Part shown: positions 1 through 14,428 of the stretch, one piece after another | How the letters are laid out: the number at the start of each line of letters is the position of its first letter | Numbering within the stretch: position 1 is the first letter of the stretch | Program-made: the position numbers and the translations under genes | Notes under the pieces: generated by a model | Database searches by the model: none | Told to the model about the DNA's origin: nothing | What the model saw: the letters and a program-made list of their open reading frames with translations, nothing else | Sequence record: OR228459.1 | Direction: 5' to 3' (one strand) | Length of the DNA: 64,000 bases

Positions 1-23
1 TATCTTCTCTGTATAAGAAGATA
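1..23. repeat. Terminal inverted repeat/hairpin TATCTTCT-N7-AGAAGATA
   Basis: 8-bp perfect inverted repeat at the first bases of the window. Confidence 0.7.
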
Positions 24-83
24 GAAAAGTACTAAAAAGTACTACACACCTTTTTTACAAAGTACCATTCAACCTTTTTCCCG

Positions 84-172
84 AAAGTACTCCATCCTAA
101 ATCCCAATCCTAGAAATTTTGGAGTACCCTCCAACCTCCAGCTAAAATCTCAAAAGTACTCCATCCTAAATC
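84..172. repeat. 20-bp direct repeat AAAGTACTCCATCCTAAATC (84-103, 153-172)
   Basis: Two identical copies 69 bp apart in a C-rich non-coding end region. Confidence 0.85.
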
Positions 173-188
173 TGAATCAACAAAATGC

Positions 189-217
189 TGGACAACCATT
201 CAGTACTAAATTATAAT
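189..217 (+). promoter_or_regulatory. sigma70-like promoter
   Basis: TGGACA-17-TATAAT, with AGTACT in the spacer. Confidence 0.55.
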
Positions 218-250
218 GTTATTAGTGGGAATCTACCCTCGTATATATGA

Positions 251-288
251 TGCTGTATATAATATCAGTACTGAACGAATTAACAGTA
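251..288. promoter_or_regulatory. Two overlapping LexA (SOS) boxes
   Basis: tgCTGTATATAATATCAGta (251-270) and taCTGAACGAATTAACAGta (269-288); both fit CTG-N10-CAG. Confidence 0.7.
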
Positions 289-483
289 TTAGTAGATATA
301 CCAGTACTGAAAATATTTTGAAAATAGTTGTTGACACCGTGGGAATATTTTGACATAATACACGGCATGGAAGATGTGGTGAGTTATCATCCTGACTTCT
401 GTCTTGTTTATGAAAATAGATTGAAACAGTACTAACACGTTTATAACAACGTAACAGTACTGATATGAAGTGAAAAGTATTAC

Positions 484-503
484 CCACCAGCTTAAGCTGG
501 TGG
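484..503. other. Perfect palindrome of two inverted Chi sites
   Basis: CCACCAGC-TTAA-GCTGGTGG. Confidence 0.85.
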
Positions 504-686
504 ATGTGGTTAGAATAATAAGAAGGGGAATCCCCAATCATACGATGAACTATATTCAATTCTACCAGTACTGCGAATAGTTACTCCACAAGAATGAGAA
601 GACTGTTGTAGTACTGAACTTTTTATGACGAGAAAATTTGAATAGATTTTGGGTGTACTTATCCTGTACTCTGGACGGATTAAGGG

Positions 687-794
687 CGTGTTTGATTCTC
701 ATTCGCATATAAGAATGATAAACTTTCTCAACATGAGAATGGTTCTCAGTTGCAAATAAGAATAGTTCTCAAATGAGAATAATAATGATTATCG
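687..794. promoter_or_regulatory. Array of about 5 Fur-box-like 7-1-7 inverted repeats, ~23-bp period
   Basis: TGAGAAT-g-GTTCTCA (734-748), TAAGAAT-a-GTTCTCA (757-771), TAATAAT-g-ATTATCG (780-794); partial units at 687 and 710. Confidence 0.7.
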
Positions 795-945
795 TTTTCA
801 GTACTAGACTAATTTTTCCATTGGCTAGCCTACCGCGACGGAATATAATATTCCGGCAGTATCACGAATCAGCTTGTTTTAAATCTGCCGTTATTATCTC
901 AATATCTGGGTAGAATGTCAAGCTAATATTTTAAAAAATAAATGC

Positions 946-974
946 TTGACACGTTGGCAGTACTTTGCTATTAT
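946..974 (+). promoter_or_regulatory. sigma70 promoter of non-coding unit 1, divergent from a minus-strand promoter at about 893-921
   Basis: TTGACA-17-TATTAT; the minus-strand partner reads TTGACA-17-GATAAT. Confidence 0.75.
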
Positions 975-979
975 ATACA

Positions 980-1040
980 CATAGCAAGAACAATGCTCAA
1001 GCCCACAGGGTGCGGAGGTGTATTCGTTAAAAGCTAAATG
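980..1040 (+). ncRNA. Putative small RNA, ACCC-N-GGGTGC family, copy 1
   Basis: Core GCCCACAGGGTGC at 1001-1013; own promoter; no ORF follows; ends approximate. Confidence 0.5.
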
Positions 1041-1056
1041 CGAATGATTATCATTT
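1036..1056. promoter_or_regulatory. Fur box between convergent copies 1 and 2
   Basis: aaaTGCGAAT-g-ATTATCAttt. Confidence 0.65.
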
Positions 1057-1111
1057 CGCTCATATGATACATTTCCGCACCCTCTAGGGTCTCCGCTTTC
1101 TCGCGTCTATA
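1055..1111 (-). ncRNA. Putative small RNA family copy 2
   Basis: Promoter TTGACG(1145-1140)-17-TATAAT(1122-1117); core ACCCTAGAGGGTGC at 1090-1077; ends approximate. Confidence 0.5.
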
Positions 1112-1295
1112 TAGTAATTATACGGTAATGCGGTTTATGCGTCAAGTACTTTTTTAAAGAAAATCGAAAATAATTTAGTACTATATGTATATAAGGAAGG
1201 AAAAAGAATTTTCAAAAAGTACTTGCATTCTAATTTAACCTATTGCATAATAGCTACATCGAAACGAGATACACAAACACATTAAGGAAAACGAT

Positions 1296-1529
1296 ATGAT
1301 TCGCATTGTTCGCATTAATTACTCTACCGGTGAAGCTGATAAAGTAGCGGTTATTGTATCAGAAAAGAATGATGATCATCTACACAATACGCTGATGCGT
1401 TTTGTTAGTGCGGTTGACCGTTGGGCTAGTATTGAGTACTTAGAAACGTTTAAAGTCCCTGCCGTCCAGCTTAACGGGCATGATATTAAAGCAATTTGGA
1501 ATGCTGACGAAATGATCGCGAACATGTAA
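1296..1529 (+). CDS. Hypothetical early protein
   Basis: ORF with TAAGGA RBS and upstream promoter. Confidence 0.8.
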   Translation: MIRIVRINYSTGEADKVAVIVSEKNDDHLHNTLMRFVSAVDRWASIEYLETFKVPAVQLNGHDIKAIWNADEMIANM

Positions 1530-1620
1530 TTATTTCAAGTACTATCAAAATTTACTTGACTTACTTTGATAGTACTTTATAATACTTACATACAAACGAA
1601 GTACTATTAAGGAAAGCATT

Positions 1621-1752
1621 ATGATCACTATCGAGAAAATCCGTTTAGCAGTAGAAGAACTGATCGCGGCTGGCTGGATTGTCGCAGAAAGTGAAGAAGA
1701 AATTAACATTGTAGTAAATGGTATGTATTCAGTTATGACAAACGTGGAGTAA
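1621..1752 (+). CDS. Hypothetical protein (43 aa, MITIEKIRLAVEEL...)
   Basis: Read by hand; TAAGGA RBS and promoter cassette. Confidence 0.75.
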   Translation: MITIEKIRLAVEELIAAGWIVAESEEEINIVVNGMYSVMTNVE

Positions 1753-1834
1753 GTTAGTATTAAAAGTACTTGCATTTACTTAGCGAGTACTTTATAATAC
1801 TTACATACAAACGAAACACTATTAAGGAAATATC

Positions 1835-2452
1835 ATGGAAAACATTATCGACGTTATCAAGTCTGTTTCTTATGCTGATCTGAATGAAGCACAAAAAGAA
1901 AAAGCTATTGAGATCATGCGAGAGTTAGAGAATCAAGAAATGACTCCGTTTTGGTCTGTAGATATTACTGATCAATGGAAAGAAACTTTAGACACTGAAT
2001 ACGGCATTACTGATGCAGTGATTTATTGGTCTGGTTTTTGTTCACAAGGTGACGGTGCATCGATTAGTACTGAATACTATATTGATATTGAGAAGTTTTT
2101 ACGTAAATGTAAAGCGTGGTCAAAATTCCGTGTACTGCACAAAATTATTGACCGTGAAGAAATTCATGCTAAGATTGATCGTAGCTCAAGCCGTTACAAT
2201 CATGAAAACACTGTAAGCGGTAGCGTAGAGCTTGATTATAACATTGATTGGACGGCGAAGCAGGAAAGCGAAGCTGAACGCTTAGAAGAATTTTTGACCG
2301 AAACTATTCGCGAACTTTCTTGTAAGCTGTATAAAGAACTTGATAATGAGAATGATTATCAAAACAGCGATGATGCCCTTTGGTCTACCATTGAAGCAAA
2401 TGAATATGATTTTGCTGTAAACTCAAACGGCGACGTTTTGCGTATCGCCTAA
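1835..2452 (+). CDS. Acidic hypothetical phage protein (YWSGFCSQGDGAS motif)
   Basis: ORF, RBS, promoter; motif recalled from other phage hypothetical proteins. Confidence 0.8.
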   Translation: MENIIDVIKSVSYADLNEAQKEKAIEIMRELENQEMTPFWSVDITDQWKETLDTEYGITDAVIYWSGFCSQGDGASISTEYYIDIEKFLRKCKAWSKFRVLHKIIDREEIHAKIDRSSSRYNHENTVSGSVELDYNIDWTAKQESEAERLEEFLTETIRELSCKLYKELDNENDYQNSDDALWSTIEANEYDFAVNSNGDVLRIA

Positions 2453-2557
2453 AGTACTGACATACTGTAAAACGCTCTATAACGCATTGTAGGGCGTTTT
2501 AAGGAATAGCAGTATCATTTATCATCTTAATTAATTAAACGGCGTAGACGGCGATTT

Positions 2558-2728
2558 ATGAGCAAACAAGATATATTGAAAGGGGATGTTTTATACTGGT
2601 TAGATCCTGATGATGGGATCTGTTCTGGATGGGTAACAGTATTAGACGTTAATACTACAGTACTGGTAAAAGGTGCAACGGCAGAATTTGAAGTGCTACC
2701 CGAAGAACTTTATTCGCATGAAGTTTAA
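2558..2728 (+). CDS. Hypothetical protein (56 aa, MSKQDILKGDVLYWLDPDDG...)
   Basis: Read by hand; fills the gap before the next promoter. Confidence 0.65.
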   Translation: MSKQDILKGDVLYWLDPDDGICSGWVTVLDVNTTVLVKGATAEFEVLPEELYSHEV

Positions 2729-2757
2729 AAAGTACTTGCAAAGTAAATCTAAAAGCG

Positions 2758-2812
2758 TATAATGATTTGCATAGGGGGAAACATCTTCCCCCCACTATTA
2801 AGAGAAACGATT
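2758..2812 (+). repeat. Repeated promoter/5'-stem-loop/RBS cassette (PeSL-like), 10 copies
   Basis: TATAAT-gRtttgc-ata-GGGGGAAacatcTTCCCCC...TAAG(G)A; -10 boxes at 2758, 4715, 5069, 5834, 7903, 9429, 10584, 17305, 18160, 18857. Confidence 0.9.
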
Positions 2813-3253
2813 ATGACTATCTACTATCTGACTTATAAAACCGCCGACAATGTAACTGATGCTAATGTGACCGCAAACACGGTACAGGAAGCAATGGAAG
2901 TACTGAAAGCGGAACTACCTGATATTCAGATCGTTTGTGTAGTTGATACCGAAACGAATCTTAAAACTATTATTGACCACTATGATTATTTCCGTGGGCG
3001 TAAGTTACAGGACTGGTATCATATCGAAATAGAAACACGTGAACTACCAGAAGAACAACAGCACTTTGAGCAGGGTACTAGCATTTGGGTTACTACCGAT
3101 AAACGCATATATTTCTGTTCACGCATACACGTTAACAAGCGTGTTAAAATTGGGGCAGATTCATATAGTGGACTGTTTACAAATAGTAACCTACTAAATG
3201 ACAAGTACATAAAAGTTTATGAGCGTTTTGGAACTGATATTTACGCTTCATAA
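2813..3253 (+). CDS. Hypothetical early protein
   Basis: Start moved to the ATG after the cassette RBS. Confidence 0.8.
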   Translation: MTIYYLTYKTADNVTDANVTANTVQEAMEVLKAELPDIQIVCVVDTETNLKTIIDHYDYFRGRKLQDWYHIEIETRELPEEQQHFEQGTSIWVTTDKRIYFCSRIHVNKRVKIGADSYSGLFTNSNLLNDKYIKVYERFGTDIYAS

Positions 3254-3258
3254 TATCA

Positions 3259-3290
3259 CAAAGGGGAAGCAATTGCTTCCCTGTTTATTT
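3259..3290. terminator. Bidirectional intrinsic terminator
   Basis: GGGAAGC-AATT-GCTTCCC flanked by A and T tracts. Confidence 0.75.
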
Positions 3291-3350
3291 GTACAGTACT
3301 ATAATCTATAGATACAATACCGCACCCCGTGGGCTAATGTGTTTTCATGG
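3259..3350 (-). ncRNA. Putative small RNA family copy 3, about 90 nt
   Basis: TTGACA(3384-3379)-17-CATAAT(3361-3356); core at 3336-3322; ends at bidirectional hairpin 3259-3290; near-duplicate of copy 7. Confidence 0.6.
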
Positions 3351-3782
3351 GTATTATTATGCCAGTACTACAAACATTTGTCAATCATTATTTTCAATTA
3401 ATTTAAACGCACTGTAACACTGTATAAGGCGTTTTGTTATTAAGGTAAGCAAACGTATTGAGTACTATCTAAAAGGCCGTTGTGGGCTTGCTGGTGGCGT
3501 TGTGTTGTAGTATTGAAATATAAGGAAAATATAAAAAAGGCTGTCAATGATTAAAAAAGTACTTGACGGATTGATTTAGTACTGTCATAATGTATCACAT
3601 AGAGCGGCGGGATGGATAAACATTCCTAAGTAGACAGCCAGTAAGTCATACGAAAGACTGGTGCCGAACTGAAAGAAAGATTGAAAAGAGTTTTAAAAAG
3701 TACTTGACAAGCTGGTGGGAAATTGAGATAATGACCCCGTAGACAGCAAACAACCTAATTAAACTTTAAGAGGAAATATACA

Positions 3783-4370
3783 ATGACTACTACTACTGAA
3801 AATGCACGTGTTACCCTGAAATCTGCACTGGAAGCTGGCGACGTTAAAACCCTTGCTGTTATCCTTGCGAAAGTTGGTCATGATAAAGACGGCGTATCTA
3901 AATTGGGCTTGACTTTCTCACTGGCGGTTAAGGAAGCGAAGGAAGTACTTAAAGAGCAAGCCAAAGCAGCAGAAGAAGCTGCACGTCAGGCAGCAGAACG
4001 CCGCGAAGCTAAAAAGGCTGCACGTCAAGCCGAAGAAGAAAAGCGTCAGGCTGAGATCAAGGCAGAAAAAGAAAATATGCTCAAGTTCCTCATGGATACG
4101 GTTAACGGTATGGGCTTAGACCTTGAGGCGGCAGAAGCGGCAGCAGAAGCGGCAATTGTTAAAAAGTACGGCGATGTTAACAAAGTACCTAAGTATACTT
4201 TTAACCGTGTAGCGGTGATTGTAGACGGTAAAGAATACAACATGCCAACTTCTGGGAACATGGTAGAAGTACTTAAAAATGCACTTGAAGCAAGCGGTAA
4301 ATCGCGTAAAGAGTTTATCATCGAACACGCGAAAGACAAGGCAGAAGCGGAAGCGGCATTCGCTGAATAA
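3783..4370 (+). CDS. H-NS/StpA-like protein with altered DNA-binding loop
   Basis: Coiled coil (ERREAKKAA vs H-NS ERREEESAA); C-terminus PKY...G-NMVEVLKNALEASGKSRKEFII vs H-NS AKY...[23 protein letters not shown]; two tandem promoters. Confidence 0.6.
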   Translation: MTTTTENARVTLKSALEAGDVKTLAVILAKVGHDKDGVSKLGLTFSLAVKEAKEVLKEQAKAAEEAARQAAERREAKKAARQAEEEKRQAEIKAEKENMLKFLMDTVNGMGLDLEAAEAAAEAAIVKKYGDVNKVPKYTFNRVAVIVDGKEYNMPTSGNMVEVLKNALEASGKSRKEFIIEHAKDKAEAEAAFAE

Positions 4371-4387
4371 TAACAGTACTAAACTAT

Positions 4388-4414
4388 AGGCGGCCTAAGT
4401 GGTCGCCTTTTTTT
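4388..4414 (+). terminator. Intrinsic terminator
   Basis: AGGCGGCC-taagt-GGTCGCCT plus T tract. Confidence 0.8.
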
Positions 4415-4428
4415 AATTGGGGGATTAT

Positions 4429-4689
4429 ATGGCTGTAGGATTCGCGAAAGACGGGGCAGAACAAGACGAGATTTTAGCGGTCATAAACGCCGCTGTAAGC
4501 CACGCAAGGAATCAGATAGGGGATAGTACTATTACAAGTAGAACGCACTGCCTAGACTGTTCTAGGACTATTCCTGAGCGTAGACGGGAAGTAGTAAAGG
4601 GTGTTAAGTACTGCGTAGAGTGTCAGGCTGATCATGATAGTATATTTAAAAGAGATCCGCGTAATTGTTGGCACAGATCTATGAGATAG
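4429..4689 (+). CDS. TraR/DksA C4-type zinc finger protein (YbiI-like)
   Basis: MAVGFAKDGAEQDEI...CLDC..IPERRREVVKGVKYCVEC. Confidence 0.85.
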   Translation: MAVGFAKDGAEQDEILAVINAAVSHARNQIGDSTITSRTHCLDCSRTIPERRREVVKGVKYCVECQADHDSIFKRDPRNCWHRSMR

Positions 4690-4770
4690 TACTTGACATA
4701 CTTTCTGATTAAAGTATAATGATTTGCATAGAGGGAAACATCTTCCTTCACTAATTAAGGAAATAGAATC

Positions 4771-5043
4771 ATGCGTACACCAATGACCCGCGAAGAAATA
4801 CACACAGTACTGACAACTAACATTCAGGACTGGAAGAAATACGCAGATATTAACGAAGCTCAAGACTTGAACAATGAGCTAGATGGTGAAGATCTGGACG
4901 TAATTTGTTCCCCTGAGTTTTATGATGATATTCATTCCGATGATGATGTTTGGAATGTACTGGAAAAGCATTTCCTCGATACTGATTTAAGTATCTACTC
5001 GCGTGATACTTTTATTTTAATTCACAACATTTATAACAAATAA
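4771..5043 (+). CDS. Acidic hypothetical protein
   Basis: ORF after cassette; D/E-rich. Confidence 0.8.
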   Translation: MRTPMTREEIHTVLTTNIQDWKKYADINEAQDLNNELDGEDLDVICSPEFYDDIHSDDDVWNVLEKHFLDTDLSIYSRDTFILIHNIYNK

Positions 5044-5122
5044 TTGTTGACTTACTTATATAGTACTGTATAATGGTTTGCATAGGGGGAAACATCTTCC
5101 CCCATCAATTAAGGAAAAGAAA

Positions 5123-5332
5123 ATGACTCGATACACTGTAGAAGTACGTACTACTAAAAACATTGCTACTGATGTGATTCGTTATTATAAGATGGTTTGT
5201 GGTGTTGCTCGCCGTATTAGTAAAGCGGATTATGACAAGCTGGATCGCGAAGCTGATGGTATGGATTGTTTTTATACAGTAAACACAAAAACGCATACAA
5301 AGCAATTTAAAACATTGTCTTATTACATGTAA
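5123..5332 (+). CDS. Hypothetical protein
   Basis: Start after cassette RBS. Confidence 0.75.
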   Translation: MTRYTVEVRTTKNIATDVIRYYKMVCGVARRISKADYDKLDREADGMDCFYTVNTKTHTKQFKTLSYYM

Positions 5333-5415
5333 AAAGTTTTACTCCAGTACTTGACAATAGATGCGAGTACTGGCATAATAACTTTATTGAAACGAAATAC
5401 TATTAAGGAAATATC

Positions 5416-5805
5416 ATGGCTAATCTCATTGTTCGATTGTATGAAGATTGTTTCTACTTTTAGTATTGTGGGAAACCTATATCCGTTAAAGAGATGATCG
5501 CATCGGGCTATATGTTATCTAAGCATGATCACACTGGATTCATGGCTGAAATGGTTGCGGCTAGTTATAAGTTTGGTGAAGAATGGGAAGCACAATATTT
5601 TCCGGCTGTCAATGCAATGATTAAGCGGTTGGCAGAACACACTGAGTTTATGGAATTTTGGACTGTTTTAAAAATGGTTGACGTGAATCAGAATGGGGAA
5701 ACGTGTCAGCCATACGCACATTTTGACGCTGGGGAAGATATTAGCACAATTTGGAAATGGTTGGAAGATAAATTTACAACAATTAAAATTGCAGATTACT
5801 TGTAA
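5416..5805 (+). pseudogene. ORF interrupted by in-frame TAG at codon 16 (5461-5463)
   Basis: RBS-backed ATG 5416 is in frame with ORF 5494-5805: MANLIVRLYEDCFYF*YCGKPISVKEM... Confidence 0.65.
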
Positions 5806-5889
5806 AAGTACTTGCATTACTATCTGAAAAGCGTATAATGGTTTGCATAGGGGGAAACATCTTCCCCCACTAACTAAGAGAAGAATATC

Positions 5890-6270
5890 ATGGCTAATCA
5901 AATCACTCCAGCACAGACCTTCAATAAATTCAGTACTGAAATCGTATTGAAAGAGTATGTGCCAGATTATGGTTGGACTGATGCATGTGTATGCACTGAT
6001 GTAGCAGATGCAAAGCAACGCATTAAAGATTATCGTGCGGAGGGTTTACAGGTTAAAACTGCCCGTCGCCGTGTACTTAACAAAGATGCTTTCTTATGTC
6101 AAGCTCTTTTAAACTTCTGCCGTGACTACTATCGCCGTACTGGTGGATTATGGCCTAATGAGGTTGAAGTACTGAAATCTAACGGTAAAGTAAAATTTAC
6201 CTTGACTTTAAAAGAAATTGAGGAAGTACTTGGTGATGATTGTTTTTTAGTAACTTCACAGCCAGCATAA
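5890..6270 (+). CDS. Hypothetical protein
   Basis: ORF after cassette. Confidence 0.8.
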   Translation: MANQITPAQTFNKFSTEIVLKEYVPDYGWTDACVCTDVADAKQRIKDYRAEGLQVKTARRRVLNKDAFLCQALLNFCRDYYRRTGGLWPNEVEVLKSNGKVKFTLTLKEIEEVLGDDCFLVTSQPA

Positions 6271-6339
6271 AAAAGTACTTGACACATAACGGGGATATGA
6301 TACAATATCCCCATATTGAAAAGTAATGGAAGTACTGAA

Positions 6340-6531
6340 ATGAATTATCAAAAGGTTAGCAAGCGAGTAGTTGAACTCTCTAAGAAAGCACGTAAAGAGT
6401 ATACCTTAGAACGTTCAATTAACAACTATCATTTAAAGCAAGGTGATAAGTTTATTGTTATTGACGAACCTTTGGAAATCGTGTATATTGTAGTTAATGC
6501 GATGATTCGTGATAAAACGAGGATTAAGTAA
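6340..6531 (+). CDS. Hypothetical protein
   Basis: ATG after GGAAG; promoter upstream. Confidence 0.7.
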   Translation: MNYQKVSKRVVELSKKARKEYTLERSINNYHLKQGDKFIVIDEPLEIVYIVVNAMIRDKTRIK

Positions 6532-6786
6532 ATGCGTACATTAGACCAACTTATTGACCCTAATACGTCAGCACGTCGATCAATGGTTACTATCGGCGGT
6601 AATGGTAAACAACACTGGAGTGGTTACATTTGCTTTATTGTTGGTGGAAAAATGTATGAGCGGGTAGTATATCACAAAGAGATTAATTATATACTATTCC
6701 GTAAAGAAGTCATAGCAGTCGATCCTACCGCCCTAAAACCGATTGCAGGGGCATGGAACAAAGAATCGCTGTACCTTACAGCTTAA
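6532..6786 (+). CDS. Hypothetical protein
   Basis: Translationally coupled ORF. Confidence 0.75.
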   Translation: MRTLDQLIDPNTSARRSMVTIGGNGKQHWSGYICFIVGGKMYERVVYHKEINYILFRKEVIAVDPTALKPIAGAWNKESLYLTA

Positions 6787-6835
6787 CCAATAAAAGGCCG
6801 CTACGTGCGGCCTATCGCGTTCTAGAGGGTATATT

Positions 6836-7024
6836 ATGAATACTGTACAAGTACTAGATGAGATTGAAAAAATTGTTGACAGTACTAACAAACGTGATAT
6901 ACTGTTATCAAGAAATAAGGCTAACCAGTACGAAAAGAATTGCGTACAATCTGCACTAGGGGGTAACTTTGAATCGCTACACTCAACCATACTTCAAGGG
7001 AATAACAACCGCCCACCAGCGTAA
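6836..7024 (+). CDS. Hypothetical protein
   Basis: GAGGG RBS. Confidence 0.6.
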   Translation: MNTVQVLDEIEKIVDSTNKRDILLSRNKANQYEKNCVQSALGGNFESLHSTILQGNNNRPPA

Positions 7025-7226
7025 AAAGAAACTACACATAGTACAGAAACGAAAGCGTAAAGTACTTAAACTTAAACCAACATATAGTTGGGGATTGTCG
7101 TGGGATGAAATCAATCACGGACTATCATGGAATCAATTATATGTTATTGGCTCAAGTGTTGGACGCTTTCATTTTAGTACTATATCACGACAAGAAACAC
7201 GTGTAAACCCATATAAAAGTACTTGA
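6969..7226 (+). CDS. Basic hypothetical protein
   Basis: TTG start with AGGGGG upstream; overlaps previous ORF. Confidence 0.45.
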   Translation: MNRYTQPYFKGITTAHQRKKKLHIVQKRKRKVLKLKPTYSWGLSWDEINHGLSWNQLYVIGSSVGRFHFSTISRQETRVNPYKST

Positions 7227-7256
7227 CATATATCCGGCTTAGTGAGATAATACTTA

Positions 7257-7310
7257 CAAGCCGGAGAAACGGCGTGACCCATAGGGTGCGAAGAAGTAAT
7301 CAGTACTTGA
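7257..7310 (+). ncRNA. Putative small RNA family copy 4
   Basis: TTGACA(7223)-17-GATAAT(7246); GCCG-gagaaa-CGGC hairpin, then ACCCATAGGGTGC at 7277-7289; ends approximate. Confidence 0.5.
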
Positions 7311-7325
7311 GAATGATAATCATTT
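7306..7325. promoter_or_regulatory. Fur box between convergent copies 4 and 5
   Basis: TGAGAAT-g-ATAATCAttt. Confidence 0.65.
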
Positions 7326-7373
7326 ACAACACTAGACAGATTTATGCACCCGATGGGTTAGATTGTTTTCATG
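7320..7373 (-). ncRNA. Putative small RNA family copy 5
   Basis: TTGACA(7407-7402)-17-TATTAT(7384-7379); core TAACCCATCGGGTGC at 7360-7346; ends approximate. Confidence 0.5.
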
Positions 7374-7500
7374 CATATATAATATCAAAGTACTGTTATA
7401 GTGTCAAGCATTTTTATTTGATAATTATTTTAAAAAAAGTCTTGCATTACTTTCTGAATAACGTATAATACTTACATCAACCACTGAGAGGAAAGAAACA

Positions 7501-7872
7501 ATGTCTATTAAGCGTATTGTATTTGGTCGCGGTGCAAGTGAAGAAGTAGTACCTGTTGAACTGATCGCGATGTTAAATGAAATGATTCGCCGTGGTGATA
7601 TTAATTTTAGTCCTGATGTAATGCCTTATGCGATTTCGTATGAGGTGCGTAAAAGTCCTAAGTACTGGAAGATTGACCGTGTAGAATTGGACAAAGAAAC
7701 CGGAGAGATTCGCGAGTTTGGGCGTAGTTCTGTTGGTGCTGTAGATTTTGAAGGGAACGTGTTTAAATCTGCCAGCTATAAAGCCGTTGCTAAGGGTATC
7801 CGTGGAAACATCTTTGTTAACAATGGTTTTAGTGCAATTACTGGTGACGGATATATTCGTTATTTAAATTAA
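7501..7872 (+). CDS. Conserved phage hypothetical protein (GNVFKSASYKAVAKGIRGNI motif)
   Basis: Resembles a widespread phage family with a GDxYKxASWKAPAK-like motif. Confidence 0.8.
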   Translation: MSIKRIVFGRGASEEVVPVELIAMLNEMIRRGDINFSPDVMPYAISYEVRKSPKYWKIDRVELDKETGEIREFGRSSVGAVDFEGNVFKSASYKAVAKGIRGNIFVNNGFSAITGDGYIRYLN

Positions 7873-7959
7873 AAAGTACTTGCAAAGTAATCTGATTAGC
7901 GTATAATGTTTTACATAGAGAGGGGAAATAGTTTCCCCTCCATATTAAGGAAAAGTATC

Positions 7960-8196
7960 ATGGCACAGAAAATCACTCGCGATAACGTAGAATTTTACAT
8001 TGATATCCTGAATACTAAACTTGAAAAGATGGGTGCTCCACTACGTTACAAAATGATCCCTGTTGCTGGTGGTTATGAGTTGCAAAAGTACAAGGGTGAT
8101 ATTCAGGTTGATTATTGTGTATCTGGTCAAAAACTCCGTGAAGTTTATGAGATTGTACGTTTTGCAGCTAACATGATTTCGGATAACGTGAAGTAA
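7960..8196 (+). CDS. Hypothetical protein
   Basis: Start after cassette RBS. Confidence 0.8.
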   Translation: MAQKITRDNVEFYIDILNTKLEKMGAPLRYKMIPVAGGYELQKYKGDIQVDYCVSGQKLREVYEIVRFAANMISDNVK

Positions 8197-8276
8197 TTAT
8201 TATCAAAAAGTACTATTGACAGAAACATGATAGTACTTTATAATACTTACATCAATTAAGCAAAGAGGAAAACAAA

Positions 8277-8582
8277 ATGCAAATGTCTAACCTGTATGTA
8301 GCTCACATCACTATGCGTCATGGTGAATATGAAACACTGGTTAAACGTCTGATTATTGCTAAGAGTTTAGCAGAGGCAGAATTATACGCCTATGAAGAAG
8401 GGATGGCAACATTTGACGGTAGCGAATTAGAAGATAAATCCAGCTATCAAGAAGCGGATCAACCTCATACGTGGTATTTCTCAGGCGGGGATTGGTGCGT
8501 TACTCTTAATGCAGTTACATGGATTGAGGATCGCGAAACAGCTAAAGTAATTGCTAAATCTGATTTACTGTCTTATCTGTAA
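8277..8582 (+). CDS. Hypothetical protein
   Basis: ORF, GAGG RBS, promoter. Confidence 0.8.
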   Translation: MQMSNLYVAHITMRHGEYETLVKRLIIAKSLAEAELYAYEEGMATFDGSELEDKSSYQEADQPHTWYFSGGDWCVTLNAVTWIEDRETAKVIAKSDLLSYL

Positions 8583-8649
8583 AAGTACTTGACAACCTTT
8601 CGGGGGTAGGATATACTATCCCCATCAATTAAGCAAAGAGAGAAACAAA

Positions 8650-9060
8650 ATGTTTAAAATTACTAGCGTAGAAAAAAGCGGCGATTCCATGATTGTAAGT
8701 GCTTTCTGGAATGATGCTTGTCAAGTATCTATTAGCTTTAATCAAATGGGCGTAGTACAATCCTGTACTTTCGCAGAGGATACCAAAGAGCGAGCACAAT
8801 TAGAAGATCATGCACGTTCGGTAATTAAATTCAATATTCCTATTGAAATGGAACCTAATATCATTTATACTGATGATCAGGTCGAGCAAATGAAACGTTG
8901 GTATGAATCTTTGATTAAAGCGGAAAAGGTCATTGCAGAAATGGATCAATGTATCGTTGAAGCTGATTGGTTATCTGATATGTTCGGGCAAACATCCGGT
9001 AGCATTATTGATGCCCTGTTTAATGTTCGTGCGGCGTTAGATCCTCGCATCAATCAATAA
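8650..9060 (+). CDS. Hypothetical protein
   Basis: ORF, promoter, terminator downstream. Confidence 0.8.
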   Translation: MFKITSVEKSGDSMIVSAFWNDACQVSISFNQMGVVQSCTFAEDTKERAQLEDHARSVIKFNIPIEMEPNIIYTDDQVEQMKRWYESLIKAEKVIAEMDQCIVEADWLSDMFGQTSGSIIDALFNVRAALDPRINQ

Positions 9061-9063
9061 AGA

Positions 9064-9101
9064 AAAAAGGGGTTGACTTCGGTCGCCCCTTTTGTTATTA
9101 T
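9064..9101 (+). terminator. Fused terminator/promoter element (also at 14032, 14966, 16164, 17132)
   Basis: GGGGTTGAC-TTCG-GTCGCCCC-TTTT; TTGACT in the stem lies 17 bp before TATTAT. Confidence 0.75.
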
Positions 9102-9106
9102 ATAGT

Positions 9107-9165
9107 CATTGGCAGATAAGCTACTAACCCATAGGGTGCAATAGTCTGTCTGTAGTATTTTAGTA
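9107..9165 (+). ncRNA. Putative small RNA family copy 6
   Basis: Core TAACCCATAGGGTGC at 9125-9139; shares CATTGGCAGATAAGC with copy 10; ends approximate. Confidence 0.5.
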
Positions 9166-9237
9166 CTGAAAAATAGTTCTTGCTTTTATGTGCTGGTGGT
9201 GTATAATACTTGTATTGAAACAAACGAGGGTTCAATT

Positions 9238-9399
9238 ATGGAACATGATTTTGATTCATCGGATTTTGAGTTGGCTAGTGATTATGCATGGCATCTTATG
9301 CAAAAAGAAGGTAAATCCGAAACTGATGCATTAATGCAGGCGGCTAACCAATATAATATTAATTACGTATCATTACAAGGATATTGGGATCAAGCATAA
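9238..9399 (+). CDS. Small acidic hypothetical protein
   Basis: GAGGG RBS; promoter with Chi in its spacer. Confidence 0.75.
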   Translation: MEHDFDSSDFELASDYAWHLMQKEGKSETDALMQAANQYNINYVSLQGYWDQA

Positions 9400-9483
9400 A
9401 AAGTACTTGCATTACATATTCAGTACTGTATAATGGTTTGCATAGGGAAAAACAACTTCCCCCACTAATTAAGGAAATGAATT

Positions 9484-9948
9484 ATGAATAGCATCCAGTT
9501 CGTAGAAGCCATTGAAAAAGAATTCCTGTCAGTATTTCCTAACGGTTTCTTTATTGCCCGACCTTTACCGTTGGGCGGTGATGTAGGGATCACTATGGGA
9601 CTGACTCGCGAACAGGCCGATTGTCCTCATAATATCCGTGATAATGATCGTATGCGTATGACCTTCGCGATCCACGGTATGAAGTTTGGGGATAGTGAAG
9701 ATTATAACGACAAGTTAATTATGGAACCGTACTATTCAGCGATTAGCACGATTCCACGCAAGCCATACTACGCTATGGGACACGATAAGATCAAGACACG
9801 CAAAACCACTAACACGCCGGAAAAATTGATTGTAACGCTTTCTAAGTACATTAAAACCGCAGGGCAGCAAGTAAAAGAGCTAGCAGAAGTAAACGAGATT
9901 TATCAGCAGGAACAGATTAAACCTCAGTACTTAGAAATTAACGTGTAA
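9484..9948 (+). CDS. Hypothetical protein
   Basis: ORF after cassette. Confidence 0.85.
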   Translation: MNSIQFVEAIEKEFLSVFPNGFFIARPLPLGGDVGITMGLTREQADCPHNIRDNDRMRMTFAIHGMKFGDSEDYNDKLIMEPYYSAISTIPRKPYYAMGHDKIKTRKTTNTPEKLIVTLSKYIKTAGQQVKELAEVNEIYQQEQIKPQYLEINV

Positions 9949-10016
9949 TTATTATCAAAAGTACTTTACAAATACAGTAGAGTACTTTATAATACTTACA
10001 TCAATTAAGCAAAGAG
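9946..10016 (+). repeat. ~70-bp near-identical promoter module (copies at 9946, 10248, 12128; diverged at 8194)
   Basis: taattattatcaaaAGTACTttacaaatayagtagAGTACTtTATAATacttacatcaaytaagcaa. Confidence 0.9.
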
Positions 10017-10025
10017 GGTTACAAA

Positions 10026-10250
10026 ATGGCGGCTAAAACTTTTGAACAGTTAAAATGGGTTGCTGGTCAAATCACTGATGATCTGATGTATTCCCGAATG
10101 AATGAAGCAGTACTAAAAACCGTTTTCAATCGCCGGACTAAATCTACTGAAATGGCTACCTTATGCGGCCTTGTATGTGCTAGTGCAATGGAACGTAAAA
10201 TTAATACAGAAGTAATTGAGCGTTATTTACGCAACGTACATACTGAGTAA
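10026..10250 (+). CDS. Hypothetical protein
   Basis: ORF between two copies of the module. Confidence 0.8.
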   Translation: MAAKTFEQLKWVAGQITDDLMYSRMNEAVLKTVFNRRTKSTEMATLCGLVCASAMERKINTEVIERYLRNVHTE

Positions 10251-10327
10251 TTATTATCAAAAGTACTTTACAAATATAGTAGAGTACTTTATAATACTTA
10301 CATCAATTAAGCAACGGGATTTATACT

Positions 10328-10558
10328 ATGGATAATCGTGAAATCATTGCTCAAGTACTGACACGTATTTTAATGTCAACTCGACTTTCACAGGTACGCA
10401 ACATCACAGCCGCACATGAAAATACATGGCGTGAAGCCTTAAATGGTAGTAATGCAAGTCAGCTAGCGGCGGATAATAAGCTGAAAGAAGTTATCAAGTC
10501 TGCTATGGCAGAATTGAATGATGATGCAGTAAATTATGTTTTAAATTCTTTCAAATAG
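10328..10558 (+). CDS. Hypothetical protein
   Basis: ORF after module. Confidence 0.8.
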   Translation: MDNREIIAQVLTRILMSTRLSQVRNITAAHENTWREALNGSNASQLAADNKLKEVIKSAMAELNDDAVNYVLNSFK

Positions 10559-10638
10559 TAATTGCATTACTTCTGAAATAACGTATAATGGTTTGCATAG
10601 GGGGAAACAACTTCCCCCACTAATTAAGGAAATATAAT

Positions 10639-10947
10639 ATGATTGCTAACGTTCAAGCCAACTTTGAAAACCAATTCATCAATGAAATATTGCGACTGGA
10701 TGATGGGGTCGCACGTATTAACTACGGTTTTAACTCCGGTGGTTATGAAAGTAACGTGTACTTTTATACTGCTGACGGTGGTACACTGGCAATCGATACG
10801 GTAATTGTTGAAATACAAAAAGTAAACTTCAATGATGAAAATGATCCACAGTGGTATATCATCGGCTATGACGTGAACTATGAAGATCAAGATCTTTATG
10901 ACTCACATACAGGCCAGCAAATCATTCCCGCTTATGGGGATGAATAA
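10639..10947 (+). CDS. Acidic conserved phage hypothetical protein (WYIIGYDVNYED...HTG..I.PAYG)
   Basis: ORF after cassette. Confidence 0.8.
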   Translation: MIANVQANFENQFINEILRLDDGVARINYGFNSGGYESNVYFYTADGGTLAIDTVIVEIQKVNFNDENDPQWYIIGYDVNYEDQDLYDSHTGQQIIPAYGDE

Positions 10948-10950
10948 TAA

Positions 10951-11043
10951 CACAAAGGGGAGCTAACACTCCCCTGTTTATTTGTACAGTACTAAATCAT
11001 ATAGATACAATTCCGCACCCTGTGGGTTAGATTGTTTTCATGA
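10951..11043 (-). ncRNA. Putative small RNA family copy 7, about 90 nt
   Basis: TTGACA(11077-11072)-17-TATAAT(11054-11049); core at 11029-11015; terminator 10951-10980. Confidence 0.6.
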
Positions 11044-11162
11044 CAATAATTATACTTAAAATCGGGTGACGTGTCAAGCATTTATTTTATTAAAAACGTA
11101 CTTGCAATTTTTCAGTACTGTAGTATAATACTTGTATTGAAACGAGATAAGGGAAACACAAA

Positions 11163-11702
11163 ATGATTACACAAATCTATCACGGCAGCACCCGTTTTGA
11201 TACTGCTGGTGGATATAAAGGCGGCAAGCCTAACAGCTTTCAATATGGTGTAGGTCTGTATTGTACTAATGCTTACTTGTGGGCTGAGAAGTACGGTCGA
11301 AGTGTTTATGTATTAGATGTGGAACTCAAACCAGAACACCACGCCGACAATGTAGAAATTACAATTGAAAACTTGCAATATTGGGTTAACTGCTATTGCT
11401 CGCAAAAAGTAGCAAAGATCTTTAAAAAGGAATTCAGCCAGCGTAAAACTATGACTGCAAATCGCTTTGAATTGTGGTTGTACTGGAATGTAAGACGCTT
11501 TAAACCAATCGCCGTACAATTAGCTGCTTTCTTTGCTGCACAAGGTGTAACCCATAATAGCGAGGTTGGCAATTATGGTGGTAAACTCATTCGTATCTAT
11601 GACTTTGATATTATCAAAGGTTACACAAAGGATAAAGAAGTACTACAAAAGTTAAACTACAACAATACAGAATTACCTGATTATCTGAAAGAAAAAGTTT
11701 GA
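11163..11702 (+). CDS. ADP-ribosyltransferase-like protein
   Basis: IYHGS...YGVGLYCT...AEKY, the H-Y motifs of the PARP/DT-like ART fold. Confidence 0.55.
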   Translation: MITQIYHGSTRFDTAGGYKGGKPNSFQYGVGLYCTNAYLWAEKYGRSVYVLDVELKPEHHADNVEITIENLQYWVNCYCSQKVAKIFKKEFSQRKTMTANRFELWLYWNVRRFKPIAVQLAAFFAAQGVTHNSEVGNYGGKLIRIYDFDIIKGYTKDKEVLQKLNYNNTELPDYLKEKV

Positions 11703-11759
11703 CAGTACTAAGGGAGTATTATATAATACTCCCATCTTAAGAAAACAAGGAATTACAAA

Positions 11760-11984
11760 ATGTCTTTATACTCACTGGAAGTTGAACATCATAACTTTAG
11801 TACTAAAATGATTGTAAGTACTGATGCAAAAGAGAGAGAAGATCAGTACAATGAAGTTATGACATGGGCTAAAGGTTTCTATCCTGCTGGGACTATTTTA
11901 AAGGCTAAGTGGGTATCACATGAAACTAAACTTGATTTTCATTCAGCTATTGCTGGTGGTTATGAGGGGATTAAACTGTTATGA
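11760..11984 (+). CDS. Hypothetical protein
   Basis: AAGGA RBS, promoter. Confidence 0.75.
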   Translation: MSLYSLEVEHHNFSTKMIVSTDAKEREDQYNEVMTWAKGFYPAGTILKAKWVSHETKLDFHSAIAGGYEGIKLL

Positions 11985-12130
11985 AAAAAGAATTTATCTT
12001 GCGAGTACAAATGAAAGGCGGTGCACAACGTACTTTTCGTGAATGGGGTTGGTCTGCTGGTATGGCCTTTGAACAGCTTAAAAAAGATAATCCCGATGTT
12101 CAATACAAAATAGAATCAAAAGAGGCGTAA
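11981..12130 (+). CDS. Hypothetical protein (49 aa)
   Basis: Read by hand; ATGA overlap; GAGGGG RBS. Confidence 0.7.
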   Translation: MKKEFILRVQMKGGAQRTFREWGWSAGMAFEQLKKDNPDVQYKIESKEA

Positions 12131-12207
12131 TTATTATCAAAAGTACTTTACAAATATAGTAGAGTACTTTATAATACTTACATCAACTAAGCAAAGAGGA
12201 TAGGAAA

Positions 12208-12345
12208 ATGAAAGAATCTCAATACGAAGCAGTACTGGCACAGACTGGTGAAGATCTGACTACTGAGCAGTACGCTAAAATTGAAGAGATGCTTTTAGCT
12301 GGTAAATCTGTTAAAGACACTGTGAAAGCAGTTCGTAAGATGTAA
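12208..12345 (+). CDS. Hypothetical protein (45 aa)
   Basis: Read by hand; follows the promoter module. Confidence 0.75.
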   Translation: MKESQYEAVLAQTGEDLTTEQYAKIEEMLLAGKSVKDTVKAVRKM

Positions 12346-12419
12346 AATAATTAGTCAGTACTCTTGACATTATCATAGAGTACTGCTATAATTACTTTAC
12401 TTAATCAGGAGAACATACG

Positions 12420-12737
12420 ATGGCTTTACATTCAGCAATGCGAAAAACTGTTAATATCTATGCAGATAAAAACATTATGGATTGTACTCTTGGACATACT
12501 GATAATCAATATGCCATTATTGTAAAAAACCCGTTCACTGGTGAAGATTGCATTTACAGTGGACAGTACTTAGAAAGTAATTTATTACCTGCCACAAAAC
12601 GCAGTGAAATGAAAGGGTATATTACCCGGCACAGAGCAGAACGTGACATTGCAACAATCTTTTTACCCGGTCAAAATGCTCGCGTGGTAACGATGGAAGA
12701 AGCAGAGATTTTTCTTGGCAGCCGCTTTAAAGTGTAG
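12420..12737 (+). CDS. Hypothetical protein
   Basis: AGGAG RBS, promoter. Confidence 0.8.
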   Translation: MALHSAMRKTVNIYADKNIMDCTLGHTDNQYAIIVKNPFTGEDCIYSGQYLESNLLPATKRSEMKGYITRHRAERDIATIFLPGQNARVVTMEEAEIFLGSRFKV

Positions 12738-12775
12738 TATAATACTTTTATCAAATCAAGTGGAGTACTAAAAAG

Positions 12776-12916
12776 ATGATTACACCTATTGCACCAATTC
12801 ACAAGACAGTGTATAATACTTATAGTACTCCAAAGCAGCAACATATTATCGAGGAACTGAAAGAACAGAAAAAAGAAGTAAAAAGTACTGGTAACCGAAT
12901 CGATATTAAAGTATAA
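12776..12916 (+). CDS. Hypothetical protein (46 aa)
   Basis: Read by hand; GGAG RBS. Confidence 0.55.
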   Translation: MITPIAPIHKTVYNTYSTPKQQHIIEELKEQKKEVKSTGNRIDIKV

Positions 12917-12948
12917 TACTTACATCAACCACAAAGAGGAATACAAAA

Positions 12949-13287
12949 ATGGCTATTACTTCTATCTTCTGCAACACCCGAAACGAAGCACGTCAGGCTA
13001 AAATCGATTTCAACGGTAAAATTGTTGACAATGGTTCTGATGCACCCAAGGGACAGCGTTGGGAAGTACAATACGAAGTAGCCCCCGTATCTGATGCCAT
13101 CGCGGAACTTGCAGCAATCATGCAAGCGGAAGTACAAGACATGGCACTAGAAGAAGTGTCTCCACGTGAGATTATGGGTCTTCCACGTCCTGTAAGCAAG
13201 AATAAAAAAACCCGTGCTGTGATCATGAAAGATCGCAAAGGTAATTCAGTTACTGTACAGGTTCGTCGTCGCCGCATTACTGCCTAA
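12949..13287 (+). CDS. Hypothetical early protein (KIVDNGSDAPKGQRW motif)
   Basis: ORF, RBS, terminator after. Confidence 0.8.
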   Translation: MAITSIFCNTRNEARQAKIDFNGKIVDNGSDAPKGQRWEVQYEVAPVSDAIAELAAIMQAEVQDMALEEVSPREIMGLPRPVSKNKKTRAVIMKDRKGNSVTVQVRRRRITA

Positions 13288-13327
13288 CCGAAAGGGGGAG
13301 CAATCCCCCAAACTTTTAAGAGGATTT

Positions 13328-13579
13328 ATGAAGAAGCAAGTACAACTAATTAATGGTAATTTCATGCGATTGCATTATAAACCGCAAAAGAAAATCATTG
13401 AGAAAGCTACAAAGGTAGCAAATGATTTTGTTAGTGGGACAGTTCGCCCCCGTAAACTATCTAACGGATTGTTTCAAGTACTGGATATTAGCAGAACAGA
13501 ACGTATCGTAATTGATAAGGAAAAGCAAATACATTTAATGAGTCACGAAAAGTACAATGATTTTGTGAATCAGCGTTGA
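13328..13579 (+). CDS. ParE/RelE-like toxin-fold protein
   Basis: Basic 83 aa ending LMSHEKYN, the C-terminal signature of the ParE-like phage family. Confidence 0.55.
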   Translation: MKKQVQLINGNFMRLHYKPQKKIIEKATKVANDFVSGTVRPRKLSNGLFQVLDISRTERIVIDKEKQIHLMSHEKYNDFVNQR

Positions 13580-13633
13580 CAGACTACCGACAACATAGTA
13601 TAATACTTTCATCAACTAAACGATGGTTCTAAA

Positions 13634-14023
13634 ATGAAAAATATTGTTTCTGCTATCGCTATCGCTGTTATGTTTTCTTCAACTCCAGTTATGGCATACA
13701 CTGTTAATCTGAATGAATTGACAGATTGGGGAAATCAAATGCGTGATCGCTTTGCAGTACCAGACCATATCCAGCCGCAGCAAAAACAAGGTAGTGAAAT
13801 GTTATGCCGTGGGGTAATGACTAACGAGCAAACCGGACAACAAATCCGCGAACAATTCAGTACTAGTGGTGAACGTTCGGTATCGGGTAATGATATCATC
13901 TATCATGATGAAGATGAAACCGGAAGCACTACATTGCAAATTAATGCAAAAACTGGTAAAGGCTTTATTACGATGATGGACACTGAAAAAGTTATCGTAA
14001 CTGGTAATGTAGTTTGCAAATAA
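13634..14023 (+). CDS. Exported hypothetical protein
   Basis: N-terminal signal peptide MKNIVSAIAIAVMFSSTPVMA. Confidence 0.75.
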   Translation: MKNIVSAIAIAVMFSSTPVMAYTVNLNELTDWGNQMRDRFAVPDHIQPQQKQGSEMLCRGVMTNEQTGQQIREQFSTSGERSVSGNDIIYHDEDETGSTTLQINAKTGKGFITMMDTEKVIVTGNVVCK

Positions 14024-14072
14024 AGTACTAAAAAGGGGTTGACTTCGGTCGGCCCTTTTGCTATTATATATC

Positions 14073-14125
14073 CCATAGAAACAAGTTAACCCACAGGGTG
14101 GCGTAGTCCGTCCAAAATTTATTAA
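14073..14125 (+). ncRNA. Putative small RNA/leader, family copy 8
   Basis: TTGACT(14039)-17-TATTAT(14062); core TAACCCACAGGGTG at 14087-14100; the only copy directly followed by an ORF. Confidence 0.45.
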
Positions 14126-14136
14126 AAGTATAATAT

Positions 14137-14391: not shown

Positions 14392-14394
14392 ATA
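14387..14394 (+). promoter_or_regulatory. T4-type late promoter-like TATAAATA
   Basis: Exact octamer 35 bp upstream of ATG 14429. Confidence 0.35.
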
Positions 14395-14428
14395 TATTCA
14401 TAATACCATTTTATATAAGGAGTATATT

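Follow-up and report, generated by a model that had tools for sequence, protein, structure and literature searches.

The terminal repeat and its convergent small-RNA pairs

The DNA considered here, called the window throughout, is the first 64 kb of the genome of the Klebsiella aerogenes jumbo phage fENko-Kae01 (OR228459.1, 360,105 bp), and its bases 600-7600 are 100% identical to that record with unchanged coordinates. The elements of interest are two tail-to-tail pairs of small-RNA units, pair A (~946-1145) and pair B (~7223-7407), each a module of ~190 bp in which a sequence resembling the operator of the iron-responsive regulator Fur lies between the two units. Both pairs are located in the direct terminal repeat of the phage, which is annotated in the record as bases 1-19736 and described with the same extent, 50 predicted genes and no transcript data in the literature (PMC11218385). 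Near-identical relatives of fENko-Kae01 include the Salmonella phages 7t3, SE_PL, Munch and PHA46, and the hosts are Enterobacterales, which possess Fur. The region resembles a typical early region, with many small plus-strand genes, each provided with a strong sigma-70 promoter and a hairpin in the 5' untranslated region (5'-UTR); no tRNA or tmRNA genes were found.

The features of the two pairs were identified by scans for promoters and cores, with promoter quality given as the number of positions matched:

946-974, plus strand: promoter of unit 1, TTGACA-17-TATTAT, 11/12; predicted start ~981
981-1035, plus strand: RNA module of unit 1, with 5' hairpin AGCA-AGAACAA-UGCU, core CCC-ACA-GGG plus UGC at 1002-1013, and 3' segment; 38.6 bits, E 4e-8 with covariance model R1
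1145-1117, minus strand: promoter of unit 2, TTGACG-17-TATAAT, 11/12; predicted start ~1110
1060-1110, minus strand: RNA module of unit 2, with 5' hairpin CGC-GAGAAA-GCG and core CCC-UAGA-GGGUGC at 1089-1077; 34.7 bits
7223-7251, plus strand: promoter of unit 4, TTGACA-17-GATAAT, 11/12; predicted start ~7258
7258-7305, plus strand: RNA module of unit 4, with 5' hairpin GCCG-GAGAAA-CGGC and core at 7278-7289; 43.6 bits
7407-7379, minus strand: promoter of unit 5, TTGACA-17-TATTAT, 11/12; predicted start ~7372
7330-7372, minus strand: RNA module of unit 5, of the short-leader class without 5' hairpin, core at 7357-7346; 27.7 bits

The facing predicted start sites are separated by 114-129 bp. An intrinsic terminator scan (G+C-rich stem followed by a U-tract) returned none in 975-1115 or 7255-7375. 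RNAs reading through the dyad are predicted to fold as long hairpins with the box at the tip (-29 to -43 kcal/mol, z -4.6 to -6.1), in which GGGUGCGGA pairs with the complement of the partner's core, and no U-run follows these hairpins. The two read-through RNAs of a pair are fully complementary to each other. A first-pass annotation of the window had described two convergent pairs, each around a Fur box, with no obvious terminator between the units and with read-through RNAs that would be mutually antisense; the scans place both pairs as described and bear out these points, adding the long hairpin into which each read-through RNA could also fold. It had numbered the copies of the unit only to five, and here the count had to be revised, since the window holds ten, all within the terminal repeat and none in the remaining 44 kb.

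A covariance model trained on 17 units from nine phage genomes or contigs recovered nine of these ten (E 8e-11 to 1e-4), and the tenth, at 14074-14109, has a GGGTGG core. The core motif CCNNNGGGTGC occurs nine times against 0.23 expected in shuffled sequence. Every unit possesses a sigma-70 promoter with 10-12 of 12 positions matched and a 17-nt spacer. The predicted RNA starts 2-5 nt ahead of a 5' hairpin of 3-5 bp, which is followed by CUAA, the invariant CCC-N3-GGGUGC hairpin and a segment of ~16 nt. The stems of the 5' hairpin vary among copies (AGCA/UGCU, GCCG/CGGC, UGGC/GCCA, GGAG/CUCC, GAC/GUC and others), and its loops are purine-rich (GAGAAA, GCGAAA, AGAUAA, AGAACAA). This hairpin was present in 26 of 32 unselected units from four genomes or contigs, compared with 12 on average and at most 20 for shuffled leaders, and compensatory changes were found at all four of its pairs among 17 register-matched units from nine phage genomes or contigs. 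The register-matched subset was picked for possessing the hairpin, so that only the diversity of the stems counts as evidence, and the core hairpin, being invariant, is uninformative on covariation. Because the register of the 5' hairpin varies, RNAalifold did not recover it from a plain MAFFT alignment, and the register-matched subset and the unselected count were used instead. Units 3, 5, 7, 8 and 10 form a short-leader class in which the first hairpin is missing or, in unit 3, is at best a marginal one of 3 bp. Transcription of units 3 and 7 leads to strong bidirectional terminators, which would give RNAs of ~100 nt; the four paired units and several others have no terminator, and some units directly precede a gene promoter.

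The family spans the RaK2-like jumbo phages, including Alcyoneusvirus, Asteriusvirus, Eneladusvirus, Mimasvirus and unclassified relatives. Rfam gave no match at gathering score in the 64 kb and none on any unit at E up to 5 in 1-20000. A coding explanation for the units was rejected, as only accidental open reading frames of 20-37 aa were found apart from ENKO_017 (7223-7468), whose start codon is the TTG of a -35 box and which covers the whole of pair B; the annotated coding sequences ENKO_017 and ENKO_001 (773-913) are probably not genes. A universal closing helix between the core GUGC and a downstream AGUACU was also considered, and was found in only about one third of the unpaired units, so that it is not claimed as a family feature. 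We regard it as very likely that the units are expressed as structured RNAs; no convincing target or protein partner was found for them.

Fur-like boxes at the dyads and their conservation

A symmetric 19-bp Fur matrix was seeded with the classical consensus and refined on 12 Escherichia coli K-12 intergenic regions (fepA-fes, fepD-entS, fepB-entC, fhuA, fiu, fhuE, tonB, cirA, exbB, feoA, ryhB and fecI), the genes downstream of which we take to be Fur-regulated. The classical consensus was retained by the refined matrix. Training sites scored 12.1-20.7 bits (8.8-18.1 bits in leave-one-out scoring), and the best sites in the 12 regions differ at 3-8 positions from the consensus used for mismatch counts, GATAATGATAATCATTATC. 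The sites at the two dyads are:

1040-1058: Fur-like operator A, 19-mer GCGAATGATTATCATTTCG, 17.1 bits, 14/19 to consensus
1034-1052: weaker site overlapping operator A, 6 bp to its left, 12.0 bits
7309-7327: Fur-like operator B, 19-mer GAGAATGATAATCATTTAC, 20.8 bits, 16/19 to consensus

Box A scores within the range of the E. coli training sites, and box B is level with the best of them. Each contains a perfect 13-nt palindrome, AATGATTATCATT at 1043-1055 in box A and AATGATAATCATT at 7312-7324 in box B. The pentamer GAGAA, from the hexamer variant GAGAAT typical of the phage sites, is found in 7 of the 12 training sites. Across the window, the Fur consensus with at most three mismatches was observed six times (0.13 expected), the 13-mer with at most one mismatch five times (0.73 expected), and matrix sites of at least 16 bits seven times, against 0.67 expected and a maximum of three in Markov-shuffled sequence. 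Overlapping sites shifted by 6 bp are present at 1034/1040 and 775/781, in RaK2 at 1579/1585 and in the IMG/VR contig L004 at 8336/8342, and overlapping Fur-site clusters with this shift are described in PMC2189734. A composition artefact was tried as an explanation and rejected: among seven stretches of 2.5-10 kb from relatives of like G+C content (Asteriusvirus and Mimasvirus, 37-40%), six contained no site of at least 16 bits and the seventh contained one. RaK2 and Muenster have nine such sites each in 3-5 kb. The Fur-like sites are therefore not an effect of composition.

A tblastn search with E. coli Fur as query revealed no Fur homologue in any RaK2-like phage record. Any Fur acting at these sites would thus be that of the host, present before the phage DNA arrives, and binding of the boxes by host Fur in vivo is likely. 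The first-pass annotation had put the boxes at 1036-1056 and 7306-7325, which are the right sites with borders 2-4 nt off, and exactly between the units, which agrees with a box centre within 4 nt of the core midpoint. Its naming of them as Fur boxes is favoured by the operator-like scores, the conservation and the lack of a phage Fur, with the correction that more Fur-like boxes exist, at 705-799 and 2342-2414. In pair A the box centre is 47 and 40 nt away from the two core starts; the corresponding distances in pair B are 40 and 39 nt. The boxes begin 45-59 nt downstream of the four predicted starts and span ~+45 to +70, a position from which the only direct action on these transcripts would be a block to elongation. 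That Fur binding alters the output of the paired units is, in our estimate, slightly short of an even proposition.

In all records beginning with the terminal repeat, the distance of pair A from the left end of the genome is ~0.3-2.4 kb, and mostly ~1 kb. Its cores are 87 nt apart in fENko-Kae01, Hallingskeid, Serratia BF, the Erwinia pEa phages, Yersinia fHe-Yen9-04 and two IMG/VR contigs, and 92 nt apart in RaK2 and Muenster. Pair B has a core-to-core distance of 80 nt and occurs with an identical 19-mer in Erwinia phage Hallingskeid, RaK2 and one IMG/VR contig, and with one substitution (GATAATGAGAATCATTTAC) in Muenster. An alignment of nine phages contains only three conserved islands, namely the two cores and the centre TAAATGCGAATGAGAATCATT, separated by diverged spacers. 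Cores and box are kept in four lineages of RaK2-like phages (from Klebsiella, Salmonella, Serratia, Yersinia and Erwinia). The complementarity of the palindrome is lost outside AATGA/TCATT, where one-sided changes remain uncompensated, and the left flank GCGAATGA is kept as sequence. Since the halves are not kept complementary beyond AATGA/TCATT, selection acts on the sequence and not on an RNA stem, and the box as a selected RNA stem was accordingly rejected; conservation of the left flank appears to fit protein recognition, including the second, weak site shifted by 6 bp, better than it fits an RNA stem.

In Eneladusvirus (Serratia BF, Yersinia fHe-Yen9-04, Erwinia pEa), the 1.9-2.6 kb covered contains one site of at least 16 bits, and it stands exactly at the dyad of pair A. 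The combination of a different array nearby with a single Fur box at the dyad is the strongest argument for a local function in cis. An IMG/VR scan with the 16-mer GCGAATGAKWATCATT placed 3 of the 133 matches listed inside unit pairs, and is uninformative on breadth. RaK2 also contains a lone minus-strand unit (L117 500-625) with the variant core CGCC-AGG-GCGUGGGGA, which enters a pair of Fur boxes at 513-537 and lacks a convergent partner; boxes are thus associated with units outside pairs as well.

Other Fur-like sites, unpaired units and neighbouring elements

Pair A is adjoined on its left by an array of Fur-like boxes and by a promoter back to back with that of unit 1. Further Fur-like sites in the window, arrays in relatives and the repeats that occupy the same slot in other genera are as follows:

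705-799: Fur-like array beside pair A, with boxes at 735-753 (13.6 bits), 752-770 (15.2 bits), 775-793 (21.5 bits) and 781-799 (20.4 bits)
921-893, minus strand: promoter TTGACA-17-GATAAT, back to back with the unit 1 promoter
2342-2360: Fur-like site in ENKO_004, 22.5 bits, the maximum of the window
2396-2414: Fur-like site in ENKO_004, 16.2 bits
53194-53212: Fur-like site, 20.2 bits
Arrays in relatives: L116 1222-1303; L004 8336-8453; L025 912-1051; L117 (RaK2) 227-346; L135 787-906
Repeats of 8-bp period in the array slot: L136 757-916; L138 ~680-830; L118 670-800

The predicted transcript from the promoter at 921-893 crosses the array toward a terminator at 505-482. ENKO_001 (773-913) covers part of the array. 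The motif (G)AATTTTGGGYGTA flanks the array slot in all lineages (645-660 in the window), and its complement is found again within the 3' segment of units in Asteriusvirus. The two sites in ENKO_004 may be a by-product of coding for N-E-N-D-Y and A-N-E-Y-D-F. Weaker equivalents are found at the same place in the RaK2 homologue ORF327 (L117 2710-2782). The Serratia BF stretch, including its first gene BF_0001, contains no site of at least 13 bits, the homology of BF_0001 to ENKO_004 not having been checked.

The remaining units of the family are:

3255-3384, minus strand: unit 3, unpaired and without Fur box; promoter 3384-3356, core 3333-3322, bidirectional terminator 3282-3263
9073-9165, plus strand: unit 6, unpaired and without Fur box
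10945-11077, minus strand: unit 7, unpaired, ending at a terminator
14039-14109, plus strand: tenth unit, variant core ending GGGTGG
17142-17230, plus strand: unit 8, unpaired
18708-18805, plus strand: unit 9, unpaired

The -35 hexamer TTGACT of three units (9073-9101, 14039-14067 and 17142-17170) is contained in a terminator-like hairpin (GGGGTTGACTTCGGTCGCCCC, then TTTTG), so that the terminator of the upstream gene and the promoter of the unit are fused. Upstream of the early genes, a repeated cassette composed of sigma-70 promoter, 5'-UTR hairpin (GGGGGAAACATCTTCCCCC) and Shine-Dalgarno sequence was observed at 2731-2830, 4688-4787, 5042-5141, 5807-5906 and 7869-7955; these cassettes recall the promoter-early stem-loops (PeSLs) of T4-type phages. 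The palindromic hexamer AGTACT occurs 241 times in 1-64000, most densely in 1-20000, the next commonest palindromic hexamer occurring 68 times. It stands directly 5' of many -35 boxes (AAAAGTACTTGACA), within promoter spacers (CAGTACTGGCATAAT) and directly 3' of most small-RNA units, a distribution that suggests a candidate binding or processing site for some partner. A perfect 17-nt palindrome, CGGAATATAATATTCCG at 850-866, overlaps the -10 element of a plus-strand promoter at 821-849, is also found in contig L004 and looks like an operator for some factor. Two direct repeats of 55 nt each with 75% identity, at 79-202 and less than 200 bp from the physical left end, may be linked to terminus formation.

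A candidate downstream operator, its alternatives and known systems

The placement of a Fur-like box at the dyad of two facing promoters is real, statistically robust and evolutionarily conserved, and as a sequence arrangement it suggests that a lytic phage may sense the iron status of its host at the very start of infection. The reading that we prefer, with a probability of roughly 0.4, is that host Fur-Fe2+ at the dyad acts as a downstream roadblock operator shared by the two promoters. Pre-existing Fur-Fe2+ would occupy the box once the first-entering DNA reaches the cytoplasm and, bound at ~+45 to +70 from both starts, would serve as a single downstream operator for both promoters. With iron present, both polymerases would stop after ~35-45 nt, giving truncated RNAs, and would queue back to the promoter, leaving both units effectively repressed; a block only 35-45 nt from a strong promoter probably represses through such queueing and does not merely shorten the RNA. 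With iron absent, the box would be free, both polymerases would cross the dyad and RNAs of ~110-130 nt would be made, each forming a long hairpin tipped by the box; the partner RNAs, fully complementary to each other, would be a likely substrate for RNase III.

The first-pass annotation had proposed a mechanism of this kind, with bound Fur as an iron-dependent roadblock. It is plausible, partly supported and consistent with the geometry, with the amendments that Fur control would be a lineage-specific layer on an older convergent-RNA module and would concern four of the ten units. Its further suggestion, that the small-RNA family is tied to host iron status, does not hold for the family as a whole, since only these four units adjoin a box.

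Several points weigh against the roadblock. No promoter overlaps the boxes, and Fur normally represses at the -35 and -10 elements; moreover, a roadblock leaks under the successive polymerases launched by a strong promoter. Asteriusvirus (121Q-like, vB_Ec-M-J) and Mimasvirus CBB keep convergent pairs, 69-70 nt from core to core, without a box. Read-through and overlap would therefore be ancestral, the pair would work without Fur, and Fur control would be a lineage-specific addition. The core-to-core distances of 69-70 nt without and 80-92 nt with a box make the box look like an insertion of 11-22 nt at the dyad, a point in favour of local action. Arrays of three to eight Fur-like boxes, partly with a 23-bp period, adjoin pair A in several lineages (fENko-Kae01, Hallingskeid, RaK2, Muenster and two IMG/VR contigs), and so dense an array could reflect a collective or structural role of the boxes. 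The array slot of Asteriusvirus, Mimasvirus and Eneladusvirus is instead occupied by an unrelated repeat of 8-bp period, GAYGGCTA, which hints that the slot binds lineage-specific proteins. A literature search found no transcriptome, 3'-end or binding data for fENko-Kae01 or its close relatives.

The collective role could be that of a Fur sink or a nucleoprotein platform, in which case the boxes would not act on the flanking RNAs and their position inside the pairs would be incidental. As a sink, the ~8 sites per terminal repeat would titrate Fur during replication and derepress host iron uptake for iron-dependent phage enzymes; as a platform, bound Fur would shield the AT-rich genome end, for example against silencing by H-NS. 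Multicopy Fur boxes derepress the Fur regulon, the principle of the Fur titration assay (FURTA), and Fur antagonises H-NS at ftnA. The crowding of six of the seven sites of at least 16 bits into the first 7.4 kb, together with the arrays beside pair A, agrees with both versions. The dyad site of Eneladusvirus, alone in the 1.9-2.6 kb covered, is difficult for the sink, as a single site cannot titrate Fur, and only two copies of each site are present early in infection. The dyad position and spacing, kept to the nucleotide in two independent types of pair, also tell against this explanation, which we consider unlikely.

Less probable again is that a phage-encoded protein, such as an early repressor, a replication initiator or the small subunit of terminase, binds the box, with the resemblance to Fur operators reflecting convergence or deliberate competition. 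The ~23-bp spacing of the arrays is iteron-like, the module stands at a fixed ~1 kb from the physical genome end, and the exchange of Fur-like boxes for GAYGGCTA repeats among genera is what lineage-specific binders would produce. Several sites, however, match the consensus at 16 of 19 positions and score level with the best E. coli sites, so that abundant host Fur would bind them anyway; no Fur homologue was found by tblastn in the RaK2-like phages, and the sigma-70 promoters are carried on first-entering DNA, before any phage protein exists.

A role at the RNA level has a similarly low probability. Here the box would be the tip of the read-through hairpin, serving as a loop for processing or protein recognition or as a weak terminator, and head-on collision of polymerases would stop transcription without any protein. 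Its predicted place at the apex of the long hairpins fits this idea, and collision or hairpin must suffice in the pairs that lack a box; the pairing of the core GUGC with a downstream GUAC in about one third of the unpaired units would seemingly make a closing helix part of the RNA design. The loss of complementarity outside AATGA/TCATT with retention of the left flank as sequence argues otherwise, as do the lack of a following U-tract and the recurrence of the same motif in arrays outside any hairpin context. Finally, a DNA-structural element (replication origin, cruciform or packaging signal) using facing-promoter transcription and a bound host factor would suit the long imperfect inverted repeat, the AT-rich surroundings, the fixed position near the genome end and the flanking divergent promoter pairs, but it is highly improbable, because the compensatory changes in the 5' hairpin indicate selection on the transcript, six of the ten units are unpaired with ordinary terminators or downstream genes, and a loop of ~40 nt makes cruciform extrusion unlikely.

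Extended beyond the two pairs, the roadblock reading would imply that RaK2-like virulent phages use host Fur as an iron sensor for their first transcription, that dyad operators and arrays switch the RNA outputs between short or silent and long hairpin or double-stranded forms whose effects would set the course of infection, and that some genera acquired the module as a replacement for another repeat array. This extension seems rather unlikely to hold in full. If Fur does bind, the module would be a compact case in which a virus uses a repressor of its host to read the host's physiology as the phage DNA enters. It would also be a single operator controlling two facing promoters from downstream, and would offer an entry point to a family of phage small RNAs with ten copies. 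Several RaK2-like phages are phage-therapy candidates for iron-poor host environments, and iron-dependent early behaviour would thus be of practical interest. In the literature searched, we found neither strictly lytic phages described as having operators for global regulators of the host, nor RaK2-like jumbo phages described as having Fur boxes or this RNA family.

The coupling of a small-RNA gene to a canonical Fur box, by which its output would become iron-dependent, recalls RyhB and other Fur-repressed small RNAs of enterobacteria, and the ryhB box, GACAATAATAATCATTCTC, scores 20.4 bits, the same quality as box B. Whereas the ryhB box overlaps its promoter, the phage box lies at +45 to +70 and serves two facing promoters; in addition, the phage RNAs are dissimilar to RyhB and match no Rfam family, and the element resides in a lytic phage. 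Roadblock operators inside transcribed regions include lac O2, the PurR site at purB and the CcpA and CodY sites of Bacillus. As at these operators, a high-affinity site downstream of the start, where the phage boxes are found, could act only by stopping elongation. Unlike the proteins at the lac O2-type operators, Fur is not known as a roadblock; in the phage, moreover, two convergent promoters would share a single site, and the truncated transcripts are a prediction.

Modules in which promoters interfere face to face are represented by pR/pL of coliphage 186 and by lambda OOP, which opposes cII. The phage pairs resemble them in having strong convergent phage promoters ~100 bp apart and overlapping antisense RNAs, and the orientation of units 3 and 7, toward an upstream gene, is much like that of OOP. 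In contrast to these modules, both partners are non-coding and of the same family, the arrangement is symmetric, and a site for a host regulator is placed at the dyad. The PeSLs of T4-type phages are short repeated cassettes of an early sigma-70 promoter and a stem-loop that precede genes. The units share with them this composition and the scattering through an early region of small genes; they differ in being often orphan or directed against genes, in having a conserved two-hairpin RNA and in being paired around an operator. In the related jumbo phage PA5oct, the long terminal repeat encodes two non-coding RNAs of 236-451 nt, which show high transcription throughout infection and make up 1.2-5.1% of phage reads; Fur boxes are not reported (PMC7318152). 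Homology between those RNAs and the units described here was rejected, the core motif being absent from the PA5oct repeat. By analogy, then, the module would work like a Fur-controlled gene of the ryhB type, a roadblock operator and a pair of face-to-face promoters combined.

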